Assembly: GCA_965240325.2 (NCBI GenBank)
Contig: OZ251228.1
Location: 1,612,001 to 1,676,000, forward strand
DNA: 64,000 nucleotides
Reading direction: 5' to 3'
Origin: Rebecca billardiae RCC1528
Taxonomy: Eukaryota; Protista; Haptophyta
The notes beneath the pieces are model-generated. The model was not told the DNA's origin, did no database searches, and saw only the letters and a list, made by a program, of their open reading frames with translations. Of the stretch, positions 12,748-23,738 are shown piece after piece. Numbering within the stretch: position 1 is the first letter of the stretch; each line of letters starts with the position of its first letter. The position numbers and the translations under genes were made by a program.

Positions 12748-15151
12748 ATGTTCCGATGCTGCATGGGTGGCGACAAGGGCGGCGCGGCGGGTGGCGAGGA
12801 GGCGAATCGTGACACCATCGACGAGGCGAATGCCGCCCCAGCACAGCCCACGGAGCGCGCGGAGGCGCCGACGGCGGGCTCGCCGCGCAGCGCGCCGCGC
12901 GCTCCGCCCGGCTCCGGGCTGCTCAAGCGCGCGGACATTCGGTCGTTGCCCCTCGCGGAGCAGGAGCGCGTGTGCGACGCGCTGGACGAGATGGTGCGCA
13001 CCGGCGAGTACTTCCGCCTCGCCTCGTACCACGGCTGGCCGAACGAGTTCTGCGCGCACAACGAGGAGCACTTCCCGGTGTGGCACAGAGGGTACCTCGT
13101 CGAGTTCGAGCGTGCGCTGAGCCAGGCGGACCGCTCGCTCGGCCGCGACGGCTCGATCGGGCTGCCGTACTGGGACGGCGGCCAGCCCGTCGTGAACGGC
13201 GAGACGCTCCCGGCCGTCCTGCGCCGCCGCTGGGGCACGCTGCCGAGCCAGCTCCGAGATCAGATCGCGCGCCACCCGCAGGCCGCGGGCGCGGCGCGGC
13301 TGCTCGAGACGGGGTACGCGCTCCACGGGGAGGCGCGCGTGCGGCAGGGCATCGCGCCGATGGCGCAGCGCTACGCGCTCTGCCTGCTCGAGGCCGAGCA
13401 CTGGCGGCACGCGTCCAACCGCTTCTCCGGCCGCGCGGGCGGCGTGTCGCTTGAGGACCCTCACAACACCGGGCACGTAGCGCTTGGCTTCCCGATGACG
13501 TCGGTGGGCTTCGCGGCGTTCCACCCGATCTTCTTCATGCACCACTGCCAGGTGGACCGCGTGTACGAGTCCTACCTCCGGACCGAGCCGGACTCGGCGG
13601 CGGAGTTTGCCGCGACGCAGGCGATGCTGCAGGAGCAGAACGCGGAGGGCAACCGGTTCGTCGCGCCGCTCGAGCCGTTCTCGCATCCGCGCACCGGCGC
13701 GCAGCTAGTGCCTGCGGACTGCTTCGACGCGCGCGCGCTCGGCTTCGAGTACGACGCGCTGCTCGCGCCGCCGCCCGTCGAGCGCCAGCTCCGCGAGCGC
13801 CCCACCCTTGTGCTGCTGCCCGCAGTCACCAAGGGCATGACGAATTTCCGCTCGTTCCAGCTGCATGCGTTTGTGGTGCCCGCGGCCGAGGCTGCTGCCT
13901 TCCACCCGCCAGCCGCGGCGGAGGGCGTCGAGCTGTGGGCGCAGCACCCGGCGTACGGCGGGACGGGCGCGCACTTTGGCGGCAAGGGTGCGCGCGCGCC
14001 GCCATCCCCCCCCCCGCGCGCGCGCCGCGCCGTCGTGCGCCCAACCGCCCGAAGGGGGCGGCGCGCAGCGCGCACGCGCGCTGCTCATCAGCGCACGCGC
14101 GCGCGCGCTCACGCCAACCCGCGCGCGCGCGCCGGCGGTGCTCGCGCACGCAGGCGCCGAGTGCGCCAACTGCCTCGACGCCAAGCCCTTTGACATCACA
14201 ATCGACGTGAGCGACGCCGTGCGCCGCGCGCGCACGCCGCGCTCCGAGCTCGTCGCCGTCGTGCTCGCGCTCGGCGAGGATGGCGAGCTGTCGCGCGCCG
14301 AGCACGTCGGCCTGCCCGCGCCGCGACTCGTCGGACCCACGTTCGAGTCGGAGGCGCCGATCGCGCTGGGCGCGCACGGCGCGGACGTCGCCGCGGCGCA
14401 GCGGCTGCTGCACAAGCTTGGCTTTGCCGAGGTGTGCGGGCGCGTCGACGGCGAGCTCGGCCCGCACATGGCTGCCGCGCTCAAGCTGTACCAGCGCTCG
14501 CACGGGCTCGAGCGCTCGGGCGCGCTCGACGCGGCGGTGCGCGCGTCGCTGGTGCGCACGCGCTTCGACCTGCACAGCGAGCTGCCGGGGGAGGACGACA
14601 CGCCGCGGCGCACGCCGCAGGGCGAGCTGCTGAGCGAGGCCGCGCGCGTGCCCTACCACGTCGGCGTCAGCCCGGGGTACCTCCCGCGCGCGCGCGCACT
14701 CGAGGAGATCACGTCCGCATTCGCGCAGTGGGCGGACGCGGGCGGCGTGAAGTTTGTGCGCGTGGCGGAGCGCGCGGACGCGCTCATCGTCGTCGAGTGG
14801 TCCGACAACACGCGGCAGAACGAGCTGCGCTTCGACGGCCCGGGCGGCGCGCTCGCCATCGTCGACGTGCCCAGCGGCGCGCAGGCCGGGCCGCAGCCGG
14901 CCCCGTGGCACCTTACGCTCGACGCGAGCGAGCGCTGGACGCTGCAGGGCGAGCCAGAGCCTCGGCCCGGCTCCTTCGTGCTGCTGCCGGTCGTCCTGCA
15001 CGAGGTGGGGCACCTGCTCGGGCTGGCGCACTCGGCGGCGACGGCGGACGAGGTGATGAGCCCGTACTATGAGCCGGGACGCGTCAGGCTCAGCGCGCGA
15101 GACCGCGCGCGTGCGCACGCTCTTCAGTCCCCGCAGCGCTTCAGCCGGTGA
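12748..15151 (+). CDS. Tyrosinase (type-3 copper) + tyrosinase C-terminal domain + PG-binding-like domain + matrixin (M10) metallopeptidase fusion; 2 exons
   Basis: CuA: SYHG, CAH, FPVWHR; LPYWD; CuB: PHNTGH, HPIFFMHHCQVDR; CANC. PG_binding-like DVAAAQRLL..DGELGPHMAAALKLYQRSHGL..G.LD. M10 motifs FDGPGG, HEVGHLLGLAHS and Met-turn VMSPYY. GT-AG intron 13988-14153 joins the two reading frames. Confidence 0.88.
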
Positions 15152-15181
15152 CTCGGGTGAGACAGAGACGGGTGAATCCGT

Positions 15182-18100
15182 TAGGGGGGCCCACTGGCCG
15201 CTGTGAGGCTGGCGCGCCACTGTTAGAGGCCTGTCTACGAGGGTCAGACGCTCAAACTTGGACTGGTTTATGACTCTAGGTACCTAATGGGACCAATCAG
15301 ACACGTTGGTGCAGTCATCAGAGGATTGTGCTCGGCCGCGCGCCAAGCGCGCGGCCGCGCCGGCCCCACGCGACCCGTTCGGCAGCAGTCGGTGGGGGCA
15401 GCGGCGGCGCGAGACTTCGCCGCGGCGGCCGCCTCGGCGCTCTCACGGCCGGATCCGGCGTCAGAGAGTCGTCAGCCACTCGCCCGTGCGCGCATCCTGC
15501 AGATCGTACACAGGTACCAGCGCGTCCGCGTCATCGAGCGCGGTGCGGACGACCGCCACCTCGTTGCCGCTGAGCAGCTTGCTGAGCTTGCCGTAGCTCC
15601 AGACGCGACACGCCTCGTCGTCGATCTCAGTCTCCAGCAGCGCGCGCACGAACAGCCCCTTCTTGGCCGTCGACGGTGGCGGCGCCTTCGACAAGATCGC
15701 CTCGCGCGGGACGACGCGCGGCTCGGCACCGACGGGCTCCACGACGTACTTGTCGGCGCTCTGGTCGACGCTCTTGATGACGCCCGAGAAGGTGTCCGTG
15801 TCCTCCGAGTCGGACGACACGGGCAGCTGCACGATGACGCGCGTGCCCACCTCGAGCGGAGAGTCGATCAGCGCCTGCACCTTGTCGTCCCACGCGATGA
15901 GCGCCTCGCCGTCGGCCACCTTGAGGAGCTGGTCGAGCATCGCCATGGTCTCAGCGTCGTTCGAGAGGTCGGAGAGCGGCTGCCAGGAGGGCGGCCAGTG
16001 CTTGAGCTCGGGCCGGCCGTCGTCGTCCTCGATCGCGTAGCCGTCCTCGTCCACCTCGTCGGTTGGCTCCCAGCCCACGAGCACCTCCGGCCCCGTGGCG
16101 CCCATGCGGAAGTCGTGCAGGCCCGTGATGTCCCAGTACTGCCTCCGCTTCGGCTTCGGCGCCCGCCGCCGCTTGGCCGCGGGCTCGCCAGTGCCGCGCC
16201 GGCGCGGAGCGCCCTTCTGCGAGCGCGCGATGGGGTGTGGGCGCCGGGCGCGAGCAGCGATCAGACACGCGAGGCACGCGCGCTACGGCGAGGGCACGCG
16301 CCGGCAAAGCTGAGCGGCGCGGCGCGCACCCGGCCCGCCGACTCCATCAGCTGGGCGTACGGCACGTCCTTGGCCGCCTCGCCATACTTGCCCACGACGA
16401 GGTCGGCGAGCATCCCCATCAGCTTCTCCTTCTTGCCCGACCTCGACTTGGGCACGACCTTGGACTTGTCGACGAAGCGGAAGACGTCAATCTGGTCGAG
16501 GAGCGCCGGCGCCGACAGCGCGCTCTCCGCCGGAGCGAGCTGCGACCAGCGCGTCACGCGCGACGGCGCCACCTCCTCGACGATCCGATTCTTGTGCTGC
16601 TCCTCCTTGTCGCGCTTGGCCGTCAGCTTGGCCTTGCGCTCGAGCTTCTTCGGCCGCGAGAGCGCCGCGTGGCGCGCGAGGCGGCCGATGAGCGTGCTGC
16701 CGTTGACGGCGTCATCCTGCCGCTTGAACTTGCGGGAAACCTCCAAGGCGAGCTTCCTCTCCTCCGGGCACAGGCCAATGAGGAAGGTGCCCGTCTTGTT
16801 CGCCTTCGCGCGCACCTTGCTCGCGAGGTTGTGCGCGTTCGTCGTGCGCCCCGTGCGCTGCGCCTCGCCGAGCATCCCTGAGCGAGGCGCGCGGGCCCGG
16901 ACACGCAGGGCGTCAGCTGCGCGCGCGGCGAGAGTCGCACGCGCAGCGCGTGCGCACTGGCCGCGCACTCACCTGCGATGCGCTCACACGGCGCACCGGT
17001 CGTGTGCGCGTTGCGCAGCGCGAGCGCGCGCTGCTCGTCCAGGTCGCGCATCGAGCCGAGCAGGTCGGCGAGCGGATCGTCGGGCGTCGCGAGCTCGAGC
17101 TGCCAGCGCACGGTGAAGTGGTTGAAGCGAGTGGCGAACGCGGCGCAAAAGACTTCGATGAAGCGCTTCGTGAGATTGCACTGCTCCCAGTGCACGCCGT
17201 GCGCGCCGCGCCGCTCAGCTTCGCAGCGCTCACGGAGCAGCTCGTCCACCATCGCCATCCGCTTGCGTCCCGTGAAGAGATCCACCTCGCGCCGCATGAA
17301 GCGGGTGGCGTCCACGCCGATGGACTTGGCCACGTCGTACACGCGCGTGCAGACGTCCTGCAGCTCGGTGGCCACGGTGCCCTCGCTCTCCACGCGGTGC
17401 AGCTCGGCGAGCACCTGCGTGTAGAAGAACGGGCCGCAGATGCCCTTGGCGTAGATGGCCGCCTGGTACTCGGGCCGCGTCAGGCAGTTGTACGAGTAGC
17501 GGTGCGAGGCCGACAGCTTCTCGCCGCATGCCAGCTCGTCTTCGGTGAAGAGGATCCAGAGGTACATGAGCCGGCACGCCGCCGTGCAGTTCTGCGGGGC
17601 AGCGCCGATCGCGGGGCCAGCCGCGCGCGCGTGCGTCCGCTCAGCCGCGCTCTTGCGGCGCGGCGCGGCGTGGCGCGGCGCGGCGCGGCGCGCACCAGAG
17701 TGGTCGCGCCACCACGCGCGCCGCACGTGCGCCCAAAGCCGGTGACGAGGCCGCGGATCTGCTCCGCGGTCCAGCGGATGCCGTCATCGCGCTCGTTGTT
17801 GTAGTCAATGACGAACTTGATGAACCGCTCGAAGAGGCTCCAGTCCTTCGTCGCGACGCGCGCAAACATCTTGGTGAGCGTGTGGATCAGGTGGTTGAGC
17901 GGCCGCGTGCGCAGCGAGTAGCCGCCGCTGTCCTTCTGCACCTTACCTGCGGGCCGAGGCGGGCCGAGACGCGGCGGGGCGGCGCGAGGCGGCGGGCCCG
18001 GGCAGAGCAGACCCGGGCGGGGCGGGGCGGGGCGGGACGCGGCGGGGCGCGCGCGCGAGGTGAGTGTGTGCTGCTGCGTCCGCGCTGAGAGCGGCGCACG

Positions 18101-21100
18101 ACGGGCATCGCGCGCACCGTCCTTGGTCGCGGACGGCTGGTGCCCGCTCAGGCTCGTGTACTCCCCGTCGATAAACCCGGCGGGCAGCACCTGCAGCAGC
18201 GCGTCCTCGACGGCGTCCGAGCCCGCGGTCAGCGCGTGCATCACCGCGTGCAGCAGGCAGTTGATGTACTCAAGCTTGTCGAGCACGCGCTGCCGCCGCT
18301 CCGCCGTCGGACGGCGGCGATACAGGCGGATCGCCTCGATCAGGTCGCCGTGCGTTGTCAAGAGCTCCTCCGCGATTGCGTTCGCGCGCCGCTCGGGCTC
18401 GGGCGCCTTCTCCTCCTCCTCCGCCTCCGCCTCCGCCTCCGCCTCCGCCTCCGCCTGCACCTCCATCGGATCGGCGCCGGCGCGCTCGTCCGGCCGCGTG
18501 GTCTCGGCGGTGCTGCCGCCCTCGTTGCCAGTCACCGGCGCGCCGTCGCTAGCGAGCTGCGCCGCCGCGACGTTGAAGGACTGCTGCACCGTCTGGCCCT
18601 GCTCATCCACCACGGTCACGGTGAAGCTGCCGGCCTGGCCGTCGAGCGCGCGCGCCAGCTCGAGCGCGATATCCTTCTGCTCGTCCGCCAAGGCAGTCGC
18701 CTGCTTCATGATCCCGAGCTGCTCCGCCGCCTTCTGCTCGGCCGAGGCGCTGTCCGTGATGACGACGCTCAAGATCCGCTCCGAGATCAGATCGCTCTTG
18801 GCGAGCGCGACGCCGTCGATCGCCCCGACGCCCAGGCCAGTCAGGTGCGCGACGACCTTGGCGATCTGCTTGAGCGCCTTCGAGTAGCCCGTGGCGATAT
18901 CCTTGCCCGTGTCGTGTCCGTCGGTATGCAAGATGTGCAGCGCCAACGAGCCGCTCTCCGTCCTGAGCGTCGCCATGTTGAAGTGCATGCCGGCAGTCGC
19001 CGCGCCGTCGAAGCAGGCGGCTCCAGCGACGCCCTCCGGGCCCTCGCCGCGCTCGATGGCCTTGTTGAGGTCGGCGGAGATATGGACCGCGGCTTGGAAG
19101 TCGGCGACATGGTCACCGAGCGCAGTAAGCCGCTGCGCCGTCGTGCGGCTCGGGATCCCGACCACGGCGCGGCTGCCGTCCTTGCGCGCCCGCTTGCTGC
19201 GCGCGCCGTCCATGTTGATGCCAGCGGCCTGCAGCAGCGTCTCGGCCGCCTGGGTCAGCCTGTTCGAGGCGATGCCCAACTCGGTGTTGCACTGGAGGAA
19301 CGCCGCCTGCAGATCGGCCCCTGCGAGCGGCGGCGAGGCGCACAACGCGGGGGATGGGCCGGTGAGTGGTGCAGCCGGCCGCGCGCGGCGGCGGCGCGCT
19401 CGACGCCCGTCCGCGGCCGCACAGCCGCGCGGCCGCACGCGCGCGCTGCGGCGCGGCACTCACTCCTCTTGCGCATGTCCTTGGCGGTCGGGTTGGACAC
19501 GCTGCGGCTCGCGCCGAGCTGCTGGTTGAGCTTCTTCACCTCAGCATCGGCTTTGCAGAGCTGCGAGCTGAGCTCGTCCCGCTGGGCAGTCGCCGCCTTG
19601 TGCGCCGCCTCCGCGTCGGCAAGCTCGCGCTGCGTGTCCTCGAGACCGGCCGGGTCGATGATCCGCTGCTCGAGGTCGAGAGCCTGCTCGCGCGCCTCCT
19701 GGAGCTTGCGCTCCGCCTTCTTCGACTCCGCGTCGGCCTGCCTGCGCGCATTCTTCACCTCACGCTTGGCCTCGGACTTGGCGTACGCCGCCGAGCCCGC
19801 CGCGCGCTTGGCCTTGCTGTTTGCGCGCTCGGCGTCGCCCTTGAGCTTCACCTTGTCCGCCTCGAGCTGCACCACCTTCGCCTCGCTCTGGCGCAGCTGC
19901 GTCTGCATCTCCGGGCCTCGCAGCCGCTTCCGCGACTCGAGCGTGCCCTTGAGCGTCTCGATCTTCTCGGAGTGGTTGGTGGAGACGGACCGCCAATACC
20001 CGCACGCCTTCCTCGCGGCCACGAGCTGCTTCTGCTTGCTCTTCAGCCCGTTCTCCGTGCGCTGCGTCTCGGCGCGGGCGCGCTCCGACTCGATGCGCGC
20101 GGCGTCGGCCGCCTTTACCGCCTCGCCCAGCGCCGCCTGCACCTTCGCCAGCTCCTCCGCCTGCTCGTCGATCGTCGCCTGCAGCGCCGCGCGCTGCTGC
20201 TCGAGCTGCTCCGCGTGCGCGCGCTCCGCCTCCTTCAGCGCGGCCGCCTGCTGCTTCTTCCGCTGCTCGAGCTGCTCGAAGGCGTGTTCGGCCTTGTCGT
20301 CGCTGCGCACCGCGGCGAACACGATCTCCTCATTCTGCTTGACCGCGTCGGCCACGCGCCGCTCGGCCGCGGCCAGGTCCTTCTGGTGCGCCGCGCGCTC
20401 GCGCTCCCAGCGCTTGCGCTCGTCCTCGAGCTTGCGCGTCGCGCCGAGCTCGCGCTCGGCGGCCGCCGCGAGCTGCTGCTCGGCCTGCTCGAGCTGCTCG
20501 CCGAGCGCGGCGCACTCGAGCTCGATGGCGCGGCACTTGGTCACGGCGGCATCGCACTTGTAGTACAGCCCCTCGTACGACAGCGGCACGTCCGGGCGCT
20601 TGCCCTCGCTGCTGATGCGCACGGCATCGCCCGCGATCCTCGGCGGCTGCAGCTCGGGCGGCGGCTGCCGCTGCGCGCGCGTGCGCGCGCGCGCCTCCTC
20701 GAAGCTCACCAAGCCCGAGGCGGAGCCCGTCTTCACGGGCGACTGGCTGCGCGCGAGATCCCGCTGCTGGGGTGCGCCGGCCGGGCCGTGCGCATCCGCG
20801 ATCGGCGGCGTCGAGCGCGGGGTGCTGCGCGCAGCAGCAGCCGGGCGCTGGTCGGCGGGGCGCGGAGCGGCTCCGCCGAGCGCGACCGGCGGCGTCTGCG
20901 GCAGCACACGCGCGAACGCCTCGCGCGTGACGCCGGCGTCGAAGCGCGCGGCGCAGCTCTCCGCCTCCGCCTGCGCCGCGTCGGGCCGCGCCCGCTTGCG
21001 GTTGCGCTCCACGGTGCGGAGCATCGTGGCATGCCGGTCAACCTTGACCTGCAGCGCACAGCCCATCTCGCGGAGCGTGCCGTAGAGGTCGTGCTGGCTG

Positions 21101-21937
21101 TTGATCGGACGGCGAAGGGGGACTCCAAAGAAGTTCGCGACCACCAGCGAGAACGTCACCTTCTGCGAGCAGATCCCCACGTTCTCGAGGTGCGCCTTGA
21201 TCTCACGATCGCGATCGCTCGGCCTGGGCTTGTAGATGCTGCGAACGACGCCGTAGAGCGCGCGCGCGGAGTCAAAGTCGAGCTTCTCGGGTGGGTCAGC
21301 GCGCGAAGCAGAGGCAGCAGGCGATGGATACTCCTCCAGGAATCGCCGAGCGCCCTTCTCGACCGCGTACACCTTGTCCGTGGCTCCCACGGCGGAGGAG
21401 GCCTGTTTGCCGTCGCCGGACGCTCGCGCACCGTCGGCCGGCGCGGCGGCGGTGCTGGGCTCGGAAGGTGGTGAAGCCGTGCCCGACGACGCGACCACAC
21501 CTGCATACGTCTGTACCAGCACCGCGCGCGGCTGTACCAGCTCGTCCACGCCGCTGGTGCTCGCAGGTTGGGGGAAGTTGCACATCTCGATTCAAACTCA
21601 CAGCTCGCGTACTGGTCGTTCCAGATGCCACGTTCAAATTTCGAATCGCGACGGCGGTTGGAGTCCGGGTACTCGCTCCTCTCGCCCGTCCGGACTCACC
21701 GCCATGGCGACGGGGCGCCACTGGGTGCCGCATGGCGCCGCCGAGGGCGCGGGCGTCGACGCCGTCGACCTGCTGATGGCCCGACGCCGTCCAACTTCGA
21801 CGCTGAATCCGGTGCTCGCCGCGGCTCCGCCGGGGCTGTCCGGAAGAGAGGTTCAGCGGCGACGCTGACGGTCGCTGAGCGGCCCTTTTCGGGTGAAAAT
21901 CATTTTTTACGTGCGATAAATCCAGTGGGCCCACCTA
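15182..21937 (-). mobile_element. Complete cut-and-paste DNA transposon (hAT-like), 6756 bp, 16-bp TIRs, 7-bp TSD AATCCGT
   Basis: Left TIR TAGGGGGGCCCACTGG (15182-15197). Right TIR CCAGTGGGCCCACCTA (21922-21937), 15/16 match. AATCCGT sits at 15175-15181 and 21938-21944. Contains a transposase gene. Confidence 0.92.
15461..21585 (-). CDS. hAT-like DDE transposase with long coiled coil and C-terminal chromodomain-like and tandem Tudor-like domains (6 exons, ~1800 aa)
   Basis: Approximate exons 21585-19464, 19320-18118, 17947-17696, 17591-16973, 16877-16330 and 16216-15461, all GT-AG and frame-consistent. Motifs CFDG (D), VITDSASAE (D), INCLLH (CxxH) and TTGAPCERIAG (E). Confidence 0.85.
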
Positions 21938-22208
21938 AATCCGTGAATCGCGCGTGTCACTGCTTAAGTTCATGTCGTAGTCACGTACTGCGCAAGTGAC
22001 GGACTTGTCGTCCGGCGGCGGAGCAGAGTGCCGGCCAGTAGTCAGGAGCTGTGACGTCCGCCGCTAGCAGATCGGTGACATGCTGACAGTAGTGGCGACT
22101 TGGCGGCGGGCAGCCTGCTGAGGCTGCTCTGAGTCTGACTGACGTCAGATGTACATTGCTGCGGCCGCCCCGTGATGAGGGCATCCAGCCCACGGTGCCG
22201 CTCGCAGC

Positions 22209-23738
22209 TCAGTAGCTCACCGTCGTCTCGTCCGCGATGATGTCCTCCACCAGGTCGATGACGCCGAGGGCGTCCGCCACCAGCGGCCGTTCGGCGCGCG
22301 CGGCCGCGCCGCCGCCACCGCCGGGCGGCGCCGAGCCCACCGGCTCGGACGCTGAGCCAGCGCGCTTGCGCGCGGGCGGCGCGTCGTCGAGGGCGTTGGC
22401 CGGCGTCGCCGTCGCATCCGCCACGCCGCGCTGGGCCTGCCCGCACGCCGGCGCGCGGCGCAGCACGCGCGCCACGTCGGCGTGGCCGTTGGCGTCGGCG
22501 ACGTCCGAGGCCGTCCGACCCTCCGCGTCGGCCGCGGCCGCGTCCGCGCCGTGCTCGAGCAGAAGCGCAGCGACGGCGGCGTCGTTGCGCCTGGCGGCGA
22601 CGTGGAGCGCCGTGCCGCCCCGCCCGGCGTCGGCGTCCGCGCCGGCGCGAGCGTCCGCGGGCACGCCGGCGCGCAGCAGCGCGTCGCACGCGGGCGCAAG
22701 CCCGCGCGCCGCCGCGAGCGGCAGCAGCGACGGCTCGGCGCGCGCGGCGTGTGGCGCAGCGTCTGCGATGGCGGCCGCAGCTTCGGCGTGCCCGTGGGCG
22801 ATGGCGAGGCGCAGCGCGCTCTCGGGCGCGCGCGCGATCTCCACGGCGGGCGCGCCCTCCCCTCCGGCCGCGGCCGCGCCGCTGCCGTCCCCGCCCGGCT
22901 CGCGCGCGCCCGCGCCCGCGCGCGCGGCGGCGGCGCCCTCCGGCAGAGGCAGCGCACCCGCGCGCAGCAGCAGACGGCACACACTCGCGTGGCCGCGCCG
23001 CGCGGCGAGCGCGAGCGGCGACGCGGGCTCGGTGGCGAGCGCGAGCTCGGGCGCGCGCGCGAGCAGCGCCTCGACGCCCGCGCTGAAGCCCGCCTCCGCG
23101 GCCGCGAGGAAGGGCGTGCGCGCCGCCGTCTCGTCGGTGGCGCGAGAGTAGACAACGGCCGCGGCCGGCGTCGGGTCGACGTCGGCGCGCGCCAGGAGCG
23201 CGCCGGTGAGGCGCGGCAGGGCCTCGACCACGGCGAAGAGCAGCGCGGTGCAGCCGTGCTCGTTGGCGGCGCCCGCGCTCGCGCCGAGCTCGAGCAGCCG
23301 CAGCGCCACGCCCTCGTGCCCGTAGTACGCCGCGCAGAGGAGCGGGGTGTTTTCCCACATCGATCGGCGCTCGAGGTCAATCGCCGCGCCGTGCTCGCGG
23401 CAGAGGGCGGAGACGGCGTCGACGTCGCCGTCCTTCACCGCGCGCAGGAAGTTCCGTGCCGCGTTGGCCTGCGGCGCTGGGCTAGGCCGCGGGGCCGCCA
23501 CCTCGGTCGCGGGCGCGCTGCCGCCGCCAAGGACAGCGGCGGCGGCGGCGGCGGGCGGGGCCGCGTGCTGCGCGCTCGGCTGCGGCGCGCGCTCGGCGTG
23601 CGGCGCGTCGGCGGCGGCCGCCCCTGCCACAAACGGCGCGACCTGCGGGAATGAGCCGCCCGCGCGCGGCGCGTCCTCCACCGCGCCCTGGGCGCGTCTG
23701 CGCCTCGCGCGCGGCAGGCAGCAGTTTGAGTGCGACAT
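22209..23738 (-). CDS. Ankyrin repeat protein (5' end uncertain)
   Basis: TPLLCAAYYGHEGVALRLLELGA, GCTALLFA, GGTALHVAARRNDAAVAALLLEHGAD, DAEGRTASDVA. Confidence 0.85.
   Translation of the reverse strand: MSHSNCCLPRARRRRAQGAVEDAPRAGGSFPQVAPFVAGAAAADAPHAERAPQPSAQHAAPPAAAAAAVLGGGSAPATEVAAPRPSPAPQANAARNFLRAVKDGDVDAVSALCREHGAAIDLERRSMWENTPLLCAAYYGHEGVALRLLELGASAGAANEHGCTALLFAVVEALPRLTGALLARADVDPTPAAAVVYSRATDETAARTPFLAAAEAGFSAGVEALLARAPELALATEPASPLALAARRGHASVCRLLLRAGALPLPEGAAAARAGAGAREPGGDGSGAAAAGGEGAPAVEIARAPESALRLAIAHGHAEAAAAIADAAPHAARAEPSLLPLAAARGLAPACDALLRAGVPADARAGADADAGRGGTALHVAARRNDAAVAALLLEHGADAAAADAEGRTASDVADANGHADVARVLRRAPACGQAQRGVADATATPANALDDAPPARKRAGSASEPVGSAPPGGGGGAAARAERPLVADALGVIDLVEDIIADETTVSY

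Follow-up and report, generated by a model that had tools for sequence, protein, structure and literature searches.

A rare hAT-like DNA transposon of Rebecca billardiae with a predicted chromodomain- and Tudor-like C-terminus

Analysis of a 64,000-nt stretch of the haptophyte Rebecca billardiae RCC1528 (assembly GCA_965240325.2, contig OZ251228.1, positions 1,612,001-1,676,000 of the forward strand; hereafter the window, whose numbering is used throughout) identified a 6,756-bp element at 15182-21937. Taken as a whole, it probably belongs to the autonomous type of cut-and-paste DNA transposons, within a hAT-like lineage that is rare and deeply divergent. The core of its transposase is modelled as a DDE RNase H-like fold nearest to Hermes, with a long all-helical insertion that carries an invariant CxxH and is followed by a TG...ER motif. 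The protein is predicted to end in a basic stretch resembling a nuclear localization signal (NLS), a chromodomain-like module, a Tudor/chromo-barrel-like beta-barrel, and a third conserved module, in that order. Chromatin readers that guide insertion are well documented in long terminal repeat (LTR) retrotransposons and barely so in cut-and-paste DNA transposons; here, an apparently mobile transposase is predicted to carry, conserved in four lineages, a chromodomain-like module together with one or more Tudor-like barrels.

The element is bounded by terminal inverted repeats (TIRs) that match at 15 of 16 positions, TAGGGGGGCCCACTGG at 15182-15197 against TAGGTGGGCCCACTGG (the reverse complement of 21922-21937), so that its termini are TAGG...GGGCCCAC ends, and a perfect 7-bp target-site duplication (TSD), AATCCGT, lies on both sides. 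An initial annotation of the window had reported TAGG TIRs, this TSD and, between them, a DNA transposon whose multi-exon transposase gene is intact. All of this is borne out by the TIRs, the TSDs, a second intact copy and the open exons; only its span of 15175-21944 needs trimming, since it takes in both duplications. The terminal features are:

15175-15181, no strand: left TSD AATCCGT, same as 21938-21944
15182-15197, plus strand: TIR TAGGGGGGCCCACTGG, gene-downstream end; about 26 bp resemble the left end of a family of 1.9-kb elements
21586-21921, minus strand: 5′ untranslated/promoter region within the element; 68% identity over about 230 bp to the upstream region of a paralog on contig 37
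21922-21937, minus strand: TIR TAGGTGGGCCCACTGG (minus-strand reading), gene-upstream end, matching the other TIR
21938-21944, no strand: right TSD AATCCGT, same as 15175-15181

Scans of the 72-Mb assembly (41 contigs) found 40 occurrences of the TIR pattern, compared to 0-1 for a reversed control. The search for further copies and for TSD length, as the initial annotation had proposed, yielded a second full copy on contig 10 (L031:2106-8889) that is 97.7% identical and has its own 7-bp TSD (ATGATGG). Both full copies are intact, with zero stops, indels that are all in-frame, and ten of ten splice sites kept. Most of the remaining TIR matches belong to the ~1.9-kb family, which has in common with the large element ~26 bp at the gene-downstream end and a shorter stretch at the other. 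About 34 ends of this family were counted, and the 33 fetched gave 24 complete copies (1,891-2,075 bp), 16 of them with a perfect 7-bp TSD; the family yielded no credible open frame and no internal similarity to the large element. The 1.9-kb elements are best read as non-autonomous and would probably be moved in trans by the transposase of the large element. Duplicated heptamers across the family are AT-rich, and GC content beside insertions averages 54% within 50 bp and 58% within 200 bp, compared to ~71% in the window (70.8% G+C); family insertions sit in local low-GC valleys.

The two full copies differ in a mosaic fashion. Exon 1 and the 5′ untranslated region diverge by 3.4%, with 40 non-synonymous versus 18 synonymous codon differences, whereas everything from exon 2 to the 3′ end, coding or not, diverges by just 0.3-0.6%. 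This pattern suggests recombination or gene conversion between sub-lineages. The sole indel event in exon 2 falls in a GCCTCC-type microsatellite (18400-18460) that encodes a Glu-Ala repeat in the variable insert between the second Asp and CxxH, and the contig-10 exon 2 is shorter by 12 nt. Several of the 1.9-kb copies (L057, L079, L082, L083, L086) have 1-7 extra bases between the right TIR and the duplication (e.g., AGT), or a 6-bp repeat; the extra bases may be insertion filler or variable ends.

The transposase gene is modelled as six minus-strand exons totalling 1,832 codons, separated by GT..AG introns of 95-171 nt with phases that are all compatible (donors GTGAGT or GTGCGC, acceptors CAG). 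Support for the model is comparative, from the contig-37 paralog and relatives in metagenomes, with exons searched singly. It favours the six-exon frame without frameshifts of the initial annotation: beyond the compatible phases, the paralog reads across three of the junctions and a metagenomic relative (L048) keeps four intron positions. The gene comprises the following features, all on the minus strand:

19464-21585: exon 1, 707 codons, start MCNFPQP as in the contig-37 paralog
~20941-21303: conserved helical domain of exon 1, ~120 residues
~19486-20538: coiled-coil-like stretch of exon 1, ~350 residues, by composition
18118-19320: exon 2, with core motifs and a variable acidic EA-repeat insert
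19007-19009: first putative catalytic Asp, exon 2, by alignment
18752-18754: second Asp, in TDSAS, exon 2, by alignment
18248-18259: CLLH, exon 2, by alignment
17696-17946: exon 3, 83 codons, 44-68% identical to relatives
16973-17591: exon 4, the best-conserved exon, 51-54% identity to relatives
16983-16985: candidate catalytic Glu of TG...ER, exon 4, by motif conservation
16330-16877: exon 5, extends beyond the ER motif as the helical C-terminal part of the transposase
15464-16216: exon 6, 251 codons, stop at 15461-15463
16142-16174: NLS-like basic stretch of exon 6, by sequence
~15917-16141: chromodomain-like module of exon 6 (module 1), by sequence profile
~15674-15880: Tudor-like barrel 1 of exon 6, by fold
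15464-15670: conserved third module of exon 6, by conservation

A profile of the conserved helical domain of exon 1 gave no informative match among PDB sequences.

Four lineages could be compared, namely those of the window, contig 37 and two metagenomic sources. The contig-37 paralog (L044:7109-9910) is diverged (26-63% identity by exon), has degenerate TIRs of its own, likewise starts with MCNFPQP, and encodes homologs of exons 2-5 in a single open frame that is gap-free across the exon 2/3, 3/4 and 4/5 junctions. The 6.6-kb metagenome contig L048 (Ga0181565_10011506), from another organism, contains homologs of all six exons, with introns 2-5 placed as in the window copy, including a phase-0 AGR/GTAAGT...CAG/ intron ahead of the last exon, and its element ends are a perfect 12-bp TAGGGGGGCCAG. 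The second metagenomic lineage (L049/L050 with L053) has the identical order of exon homologs. The contig-37 lineage is without introns 2-4, whereas the window and L048 lineages have introns 2-5 at common positions, a case of intron loss (or gain) within the transposase gene. At C12:421483-422010 (L043) lies what is apparently a partial copy of the contig-37 lineage, with exon-5 and exon-6 homologs only and nearly identical to contig 37. The seven bases outside the 12-bp ends of L048 (at L048:116 and at the 3′ end) differ from each other.

Relatives are scarce elsewhere. HMMER searches of exon 2 against 1.84 billion protein representatives returned four matches, three of which are true relatives (fragments of similar algal elements); the fourth was dropped as a spurious repeat protein. 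A word-indexed search with the conserved core region had zero matches, the same search with exon 6 found the window's own frame only, and a metagenome scan found four loci, two of them new. By these sequence searches, the lineage is very rare and deeply divergent.

Homologs of exon 6 are 36-41% identical in the four lineages, and without exception they are found within the element and after the exon-5 homolog. The NLS-like stretch opens exon 6 in three of the four. Searched against the PDB, a four-sequence profile of module 1 gave 17 matches at E up to 10, all 17 of them chromodomains, led by CDYL (0.0054), CBX5 (0.014), CDY1 (0.021) and CBX1 (0.027), then LHP1 and HP1. The top five PDB matches of a full exon 6 profile were also all chromodomains, and each of the ten best named matches in an ESM feature search was Chromo; Pfam Chromo itself was not matched by exon 6. 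The sequence profile thus upholds the earlier description of the first C-terminal module as chromodomain-like.

Fold prediction of exon 6 from its single sequence reached a predicted local distance difference test (pLDDT) of 44 overall and was usable only at residues 113-181. There, barrel 1 is predicted to form a five-stranded SH3-like barrel matching solved Tudor domains, and the C-terminus matches the Tudor domain of PHF1/PHF19 with a template modelling (TM) score of 0.74-0.82 by target; the first of two Tudor-like modules proposed initially is therefore Tudor/chromo-barrel-like as far as the predicted fold goes. The second proposed barrel did not fare as well. The corresponding region, module 3, is the best-conserved of the C-terminal modules, with an invariant Trp, Tyr and Trp, and it was modelled at pLDDT 23-33; comparison of barrel 1 with module 3 by hhalign gave P 0.13, and no significant internal repeat was found among the three C-terminal modules. 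An alignment of the C-terminus with the SETDB1 triple Tudor over 226 columns is the only hint of a second barrel. One chromodomain-like and one Tudor-like module are supported, and a second barrel is possible.

The C-terminus may read histone methylation, and we weighed this against a tentative but quite conceivable alternative: the transposon is real, and its C-terminal module binds DNA or RNA, or mediates protein contacts or oligomerisation, as KOW, SH3-like and some chromo-barrel domains do, without reading histone methylation. Several observations count on the side of this alternative or against the main reading. Barrel 1 has no aromatic residue conserved across the four lineages, and so no conserved aromatic cage, and Tudor-like and KOW/SH3-like barrels are indistinguishable at these scores; sub-threshold Pfam matches of the C-terminus include the Myosin_N SH3-like domain, KOW7 and HAS-barrel besides Chromo_MORC2. 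Module 3 had no match among PDB sequences, which leaves a second barrel without fold or sequence support. The third chromodomain cage position is not conserved either: the genome's own lineages have Thr, Asp or His there, and the residue aligned with it is an invariant Thr, followed directly by a Trp in the two metagenomic lineages alone. However, the module-1 profile matches canonical methyl-lysine-binding chromodomains only (CDYL, CBX1/5, HP1, LHP1), and the other two cage positions are aromatic in most or all of the four lineages (Tyr or Trp in three of four at position 1, an invariant Trp at position 2). The invariant Trp, Tyr and Trp of module 3 could also form a cage.

In the core, D104, D189 (in TDSAS) and C354/H357 of exon 2 are invariant across five sequences, as are the residues of NCLxHAxxH...SDAVE, and TG...ER closes exon 4 in each of the four sequences that extend so far; the D, D, CxxH and E motifs are present in the order first described and invariant in the family alignment. 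We modelled the core with AlphaFold2 using the contig-37 frame and a 4-5-deep alignment, and obtained a model of low confidence (pLDDT 53). An alignment with added exon-5 fragments (A5) proved misaligned and gave way to another (A6). The modelled order of secondary-structure elements is b1-b2-b3-a1-b4-a2; of the invariant Asp residues, the first lies on b1 and the second just after b4. From about residue 275 on, the model is all-helical and carries the invariant CxxH. The top PDB match in Foldseek was Hermes (4d1q_A; E 0.038, 650 columns), which came first in two aligners (Foldseek, and VIA wide with VIA second look). D190 of the model would lie opposite Hermes D248, as judged from the ends of the aligned ranges and not from a residue-level alignment. 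Six of ten rows in an ESM Atlas shape search were hAT-derived families, the best being a ZBED1 RNase-like cluster (TM 0.69 by target, 138 residues, root-mean-square deviation 2.9), and a language-model feature search of the core placed DUF659 and FAM200-ZBED5 within its three best named families, at ~0.75. These fold scores are individually middling, and all structural ones come from the same single model, yet they are concordant, and among the matches listed no rival superfamily turns up.

The element shares with hAT transposons (Hermes, Ac; hAT7, PMC12730594) short TIRs starting with TAG and the motif order D, D, CxxH, E, placed by prediction on an RNase H-like fold that has a sizeable insertion made of helices. 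In structure the model comes closest to Hermes, hAT-derived ZBED/FAM200 families lead the Atlas shape search, and the 7-bp TSD is that of hAT7 of rust fungi. It differs from them in the lack of a detectable dimerisation domain, BED finger or sequence-level similarity, and in the size of its ~1,830-residue protein, with a 700-residue N-terminal extension (coiled coil), about 465 residues from the second Asp to the Glu, and the C-terminal chromo/Tudor-like module. The hAT terminal consensus is YARNG, which TAGGG fits and from which TAGGT differs at the fifth base. An ER...G...R stretch, which we take to resemble the hAT C-terminal block, is a lead only.

Against a hAT assignment stand the profile searches, the TSD and the narrow base of the fold evidence. 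Pfam gave zero matches for the six exons and the contig-37 frame at E up to 1, including PF05699, BED and THAP, and core profiles of exon 2 and exon 4 found nothing meaningful among PDB sequences and no sequence match to any hAT. The TSD is 7 bp at both full copies and at 16 of 24 of the 1.9-kb copies, compared to the usual 8 bp of hAT elements, and the core fold evidence all derives from one model on a 4-5-deep alignment. Hence only part of the original call of a hAT/RNase-H core stands: the predicted RNase H-like fold is nearest to Hermes, but the TSD is 7 bp, and PF05699 and the BED finger went undetected. We consider hAT-like to be the best reading of the modelled core, which may or may not belong to hAT proper. 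The only PF05699 match in the 72-Mb assembly (C17:765118-765351, L055) contains a stop and adjoins a Copia-like reverse transcriptase/RNase H frame. This sole match is a degenerate fragment, and conventional hATs seem nearly absent from the assembly.

It is somewhat unlikely, in our estimate, that the element lies outside hAT, either in one of the other DDE superfamilies that have an insertion domain (P, Mutator/IS256-like, Transib/RAG-like or Kyakuja-type) or as the founder of a new one. Elements of the P superfamily combine 7-8-bp TSDs with a coiled coil that precedes the catalytic domain and with a domain inserted in the DDE core, all of which have counterparts here (a 7-bp TSD, an N-terminal coiled coil that recalls the leucine zipper of P transposase, and a predicted DDE core with an insertion), and the best ESM feature matches of the core overall are unnamed eukaryotic clusters. 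A TSD of 7 bp characterises P-type and Kyakuja elements and is not the usual length in hAT; however, hAT groups with 5-, 6- and 7-bp TSDs (hAT5, hAT6 and hAT7, the last in rust fungi) are also on record (PMC12730594). THAP was not detected by Pfam, no P-element, RAG1 or Transib structure appears among the fold matches listed, and Hermes and hAT-derived families lead the structural searches. The termini, TAGGG/TAGGT, are near the hAT consensus and are neither P-like nor of the CA..TG type, and a protein search of the element's own genome ties the family to no other element.

Two further alternatives bear on whether the hAT-like transposon is a single mobile unit. We regard it as improbable that exon 6 is a separate host gene fragment captured inside the element and not part of the transposase. 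Exon 6 does contain a 214-codon ATG-initiated frame that a public collection lists as a protein in its own right, and the joining of exon 5 to exon 6 is supported by comparison only. But upstream of the internal ATG the frame continues without a stop across the NLS-like stretch and reaches a phase-0 acceptor, which matches the phase of the exon-5 donor (also 0). Metagenome lineage M1 retains this junction, likewise after AGR, and in four of four lineages the module comes behind the exon-5 homolog and is oriented alike. A start at the internal ATG would remove the first chromodomain strand, and no free-standing host homolog of exon 6 was found in the genome. Even less probable, to a degree that leaves it barely worth entertaining, is a domesticated, immobile transposase-derived host gene: long intact multi-domain frames with chromatin-type domains occur in several domesticated transposases, but here the TIRs and TSDs are intact, two copies lie at unrelated loci with a TSD each, dozens of non-autonomous relatives have perfect TSDs, and related TIR-bounded elements exist in another organism. 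Some caution is nonetheless due, as the case for activity, and for fusion of exon 6 to the transposase, is built entirely on comparison of sequences, and when an allelic empty site was looked for, both flanks proved unique to the window locus in the assembly.

The claim that ordinary hAT transposases lack chromatin readers is not strictly true, as gene models of hAT-Chromo fusions have been described in the sponge Ephydatia muelleri (Grau-Bove et al., bioRxiv 10.1101/2021.11.30.470311). Those fusions resemble the element in joining a hAT-type transposase to a CBX/CDY-like chromodomain; they are, however, animal, known at the level of gene models, and have conventional Pfam-detectable hAT domains, whereas the element described here is bounded by TIRs and TSDs and belongs to a divergent algal lineage, with the module present in four lineages together with a Tudor-like barrel. 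A C-terminal Tudor domain has been reported for Gypsy-10_Ec32, an Ectocarpus LTR retrotransposon called the first transposable element with a Tudor domain (2025, PMC12477816). Both elements carry a Tudor-type Royal-family barrel, here on a DNA transposon rather than a retrotransposon and without a conserved aromatic cage.

As presented in papers citing Gao et al. (2008), targeting by a chromodomain is established for chromoviruses, the Ty3/Gypsy elements with an integrase chromodomain. These offer a model for how the element might work, having a chromodomain-type reader at the C-terminus of an inserting DDE enzyme, although the element is a cut-and-paste DNA transposon of another DDE lineage, without reverse transcription, and one or two further barrels follow its chromodomain; targeting is proposed here by analogy. 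The transposase would excise and insert the element in the manner of hAT transposases, with the long N-terminal coiled coil helping the enzyme to oligomerise, while the C-terminal module may tether the transpososome to chromatin and so bias insertion, as integrase chromodomains do in chromoviruses. By that analogy, chromatin-guided insertion is plausible. A bolder version is, in our view, unlikely: that the element represents an undescribed, superfamily-level hAT-like branch in GC-rich marine algae, whose triple C-terminal module (a chromodomain and two barrels) reads a histone methylation mark and steers insertion to particular chromatin, such as short low-GC gene-end spacers like the one that holds the window copy. 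If true, it would be the DNA-transposon counterpart of chromovirus targeting.

The element adds a very rare, Pfam-invisible hAT-like lineage with 7-bp TSDs to the catalogue of eukaryotic transposons. Two intact copies, with dozens of non-autonomous passengers at mapped sites, make a compact system for asking whether a DDE transposase can pick its targets by histone marks, and, should tethering prove true, the C-terminal module would be of interest for targeted insertion tools.

The window copy occupies the short 3′-3′ spacer of two convergent open frames. The upstream frame (13865-15151, plus strand), labelled a tyrosinase-protease fusion in the initial annotation, lies ~25 bp from the element, and an ankyrin-repeat frame on the other side (22209-23738, minus strand) ends ~270 bp from it.

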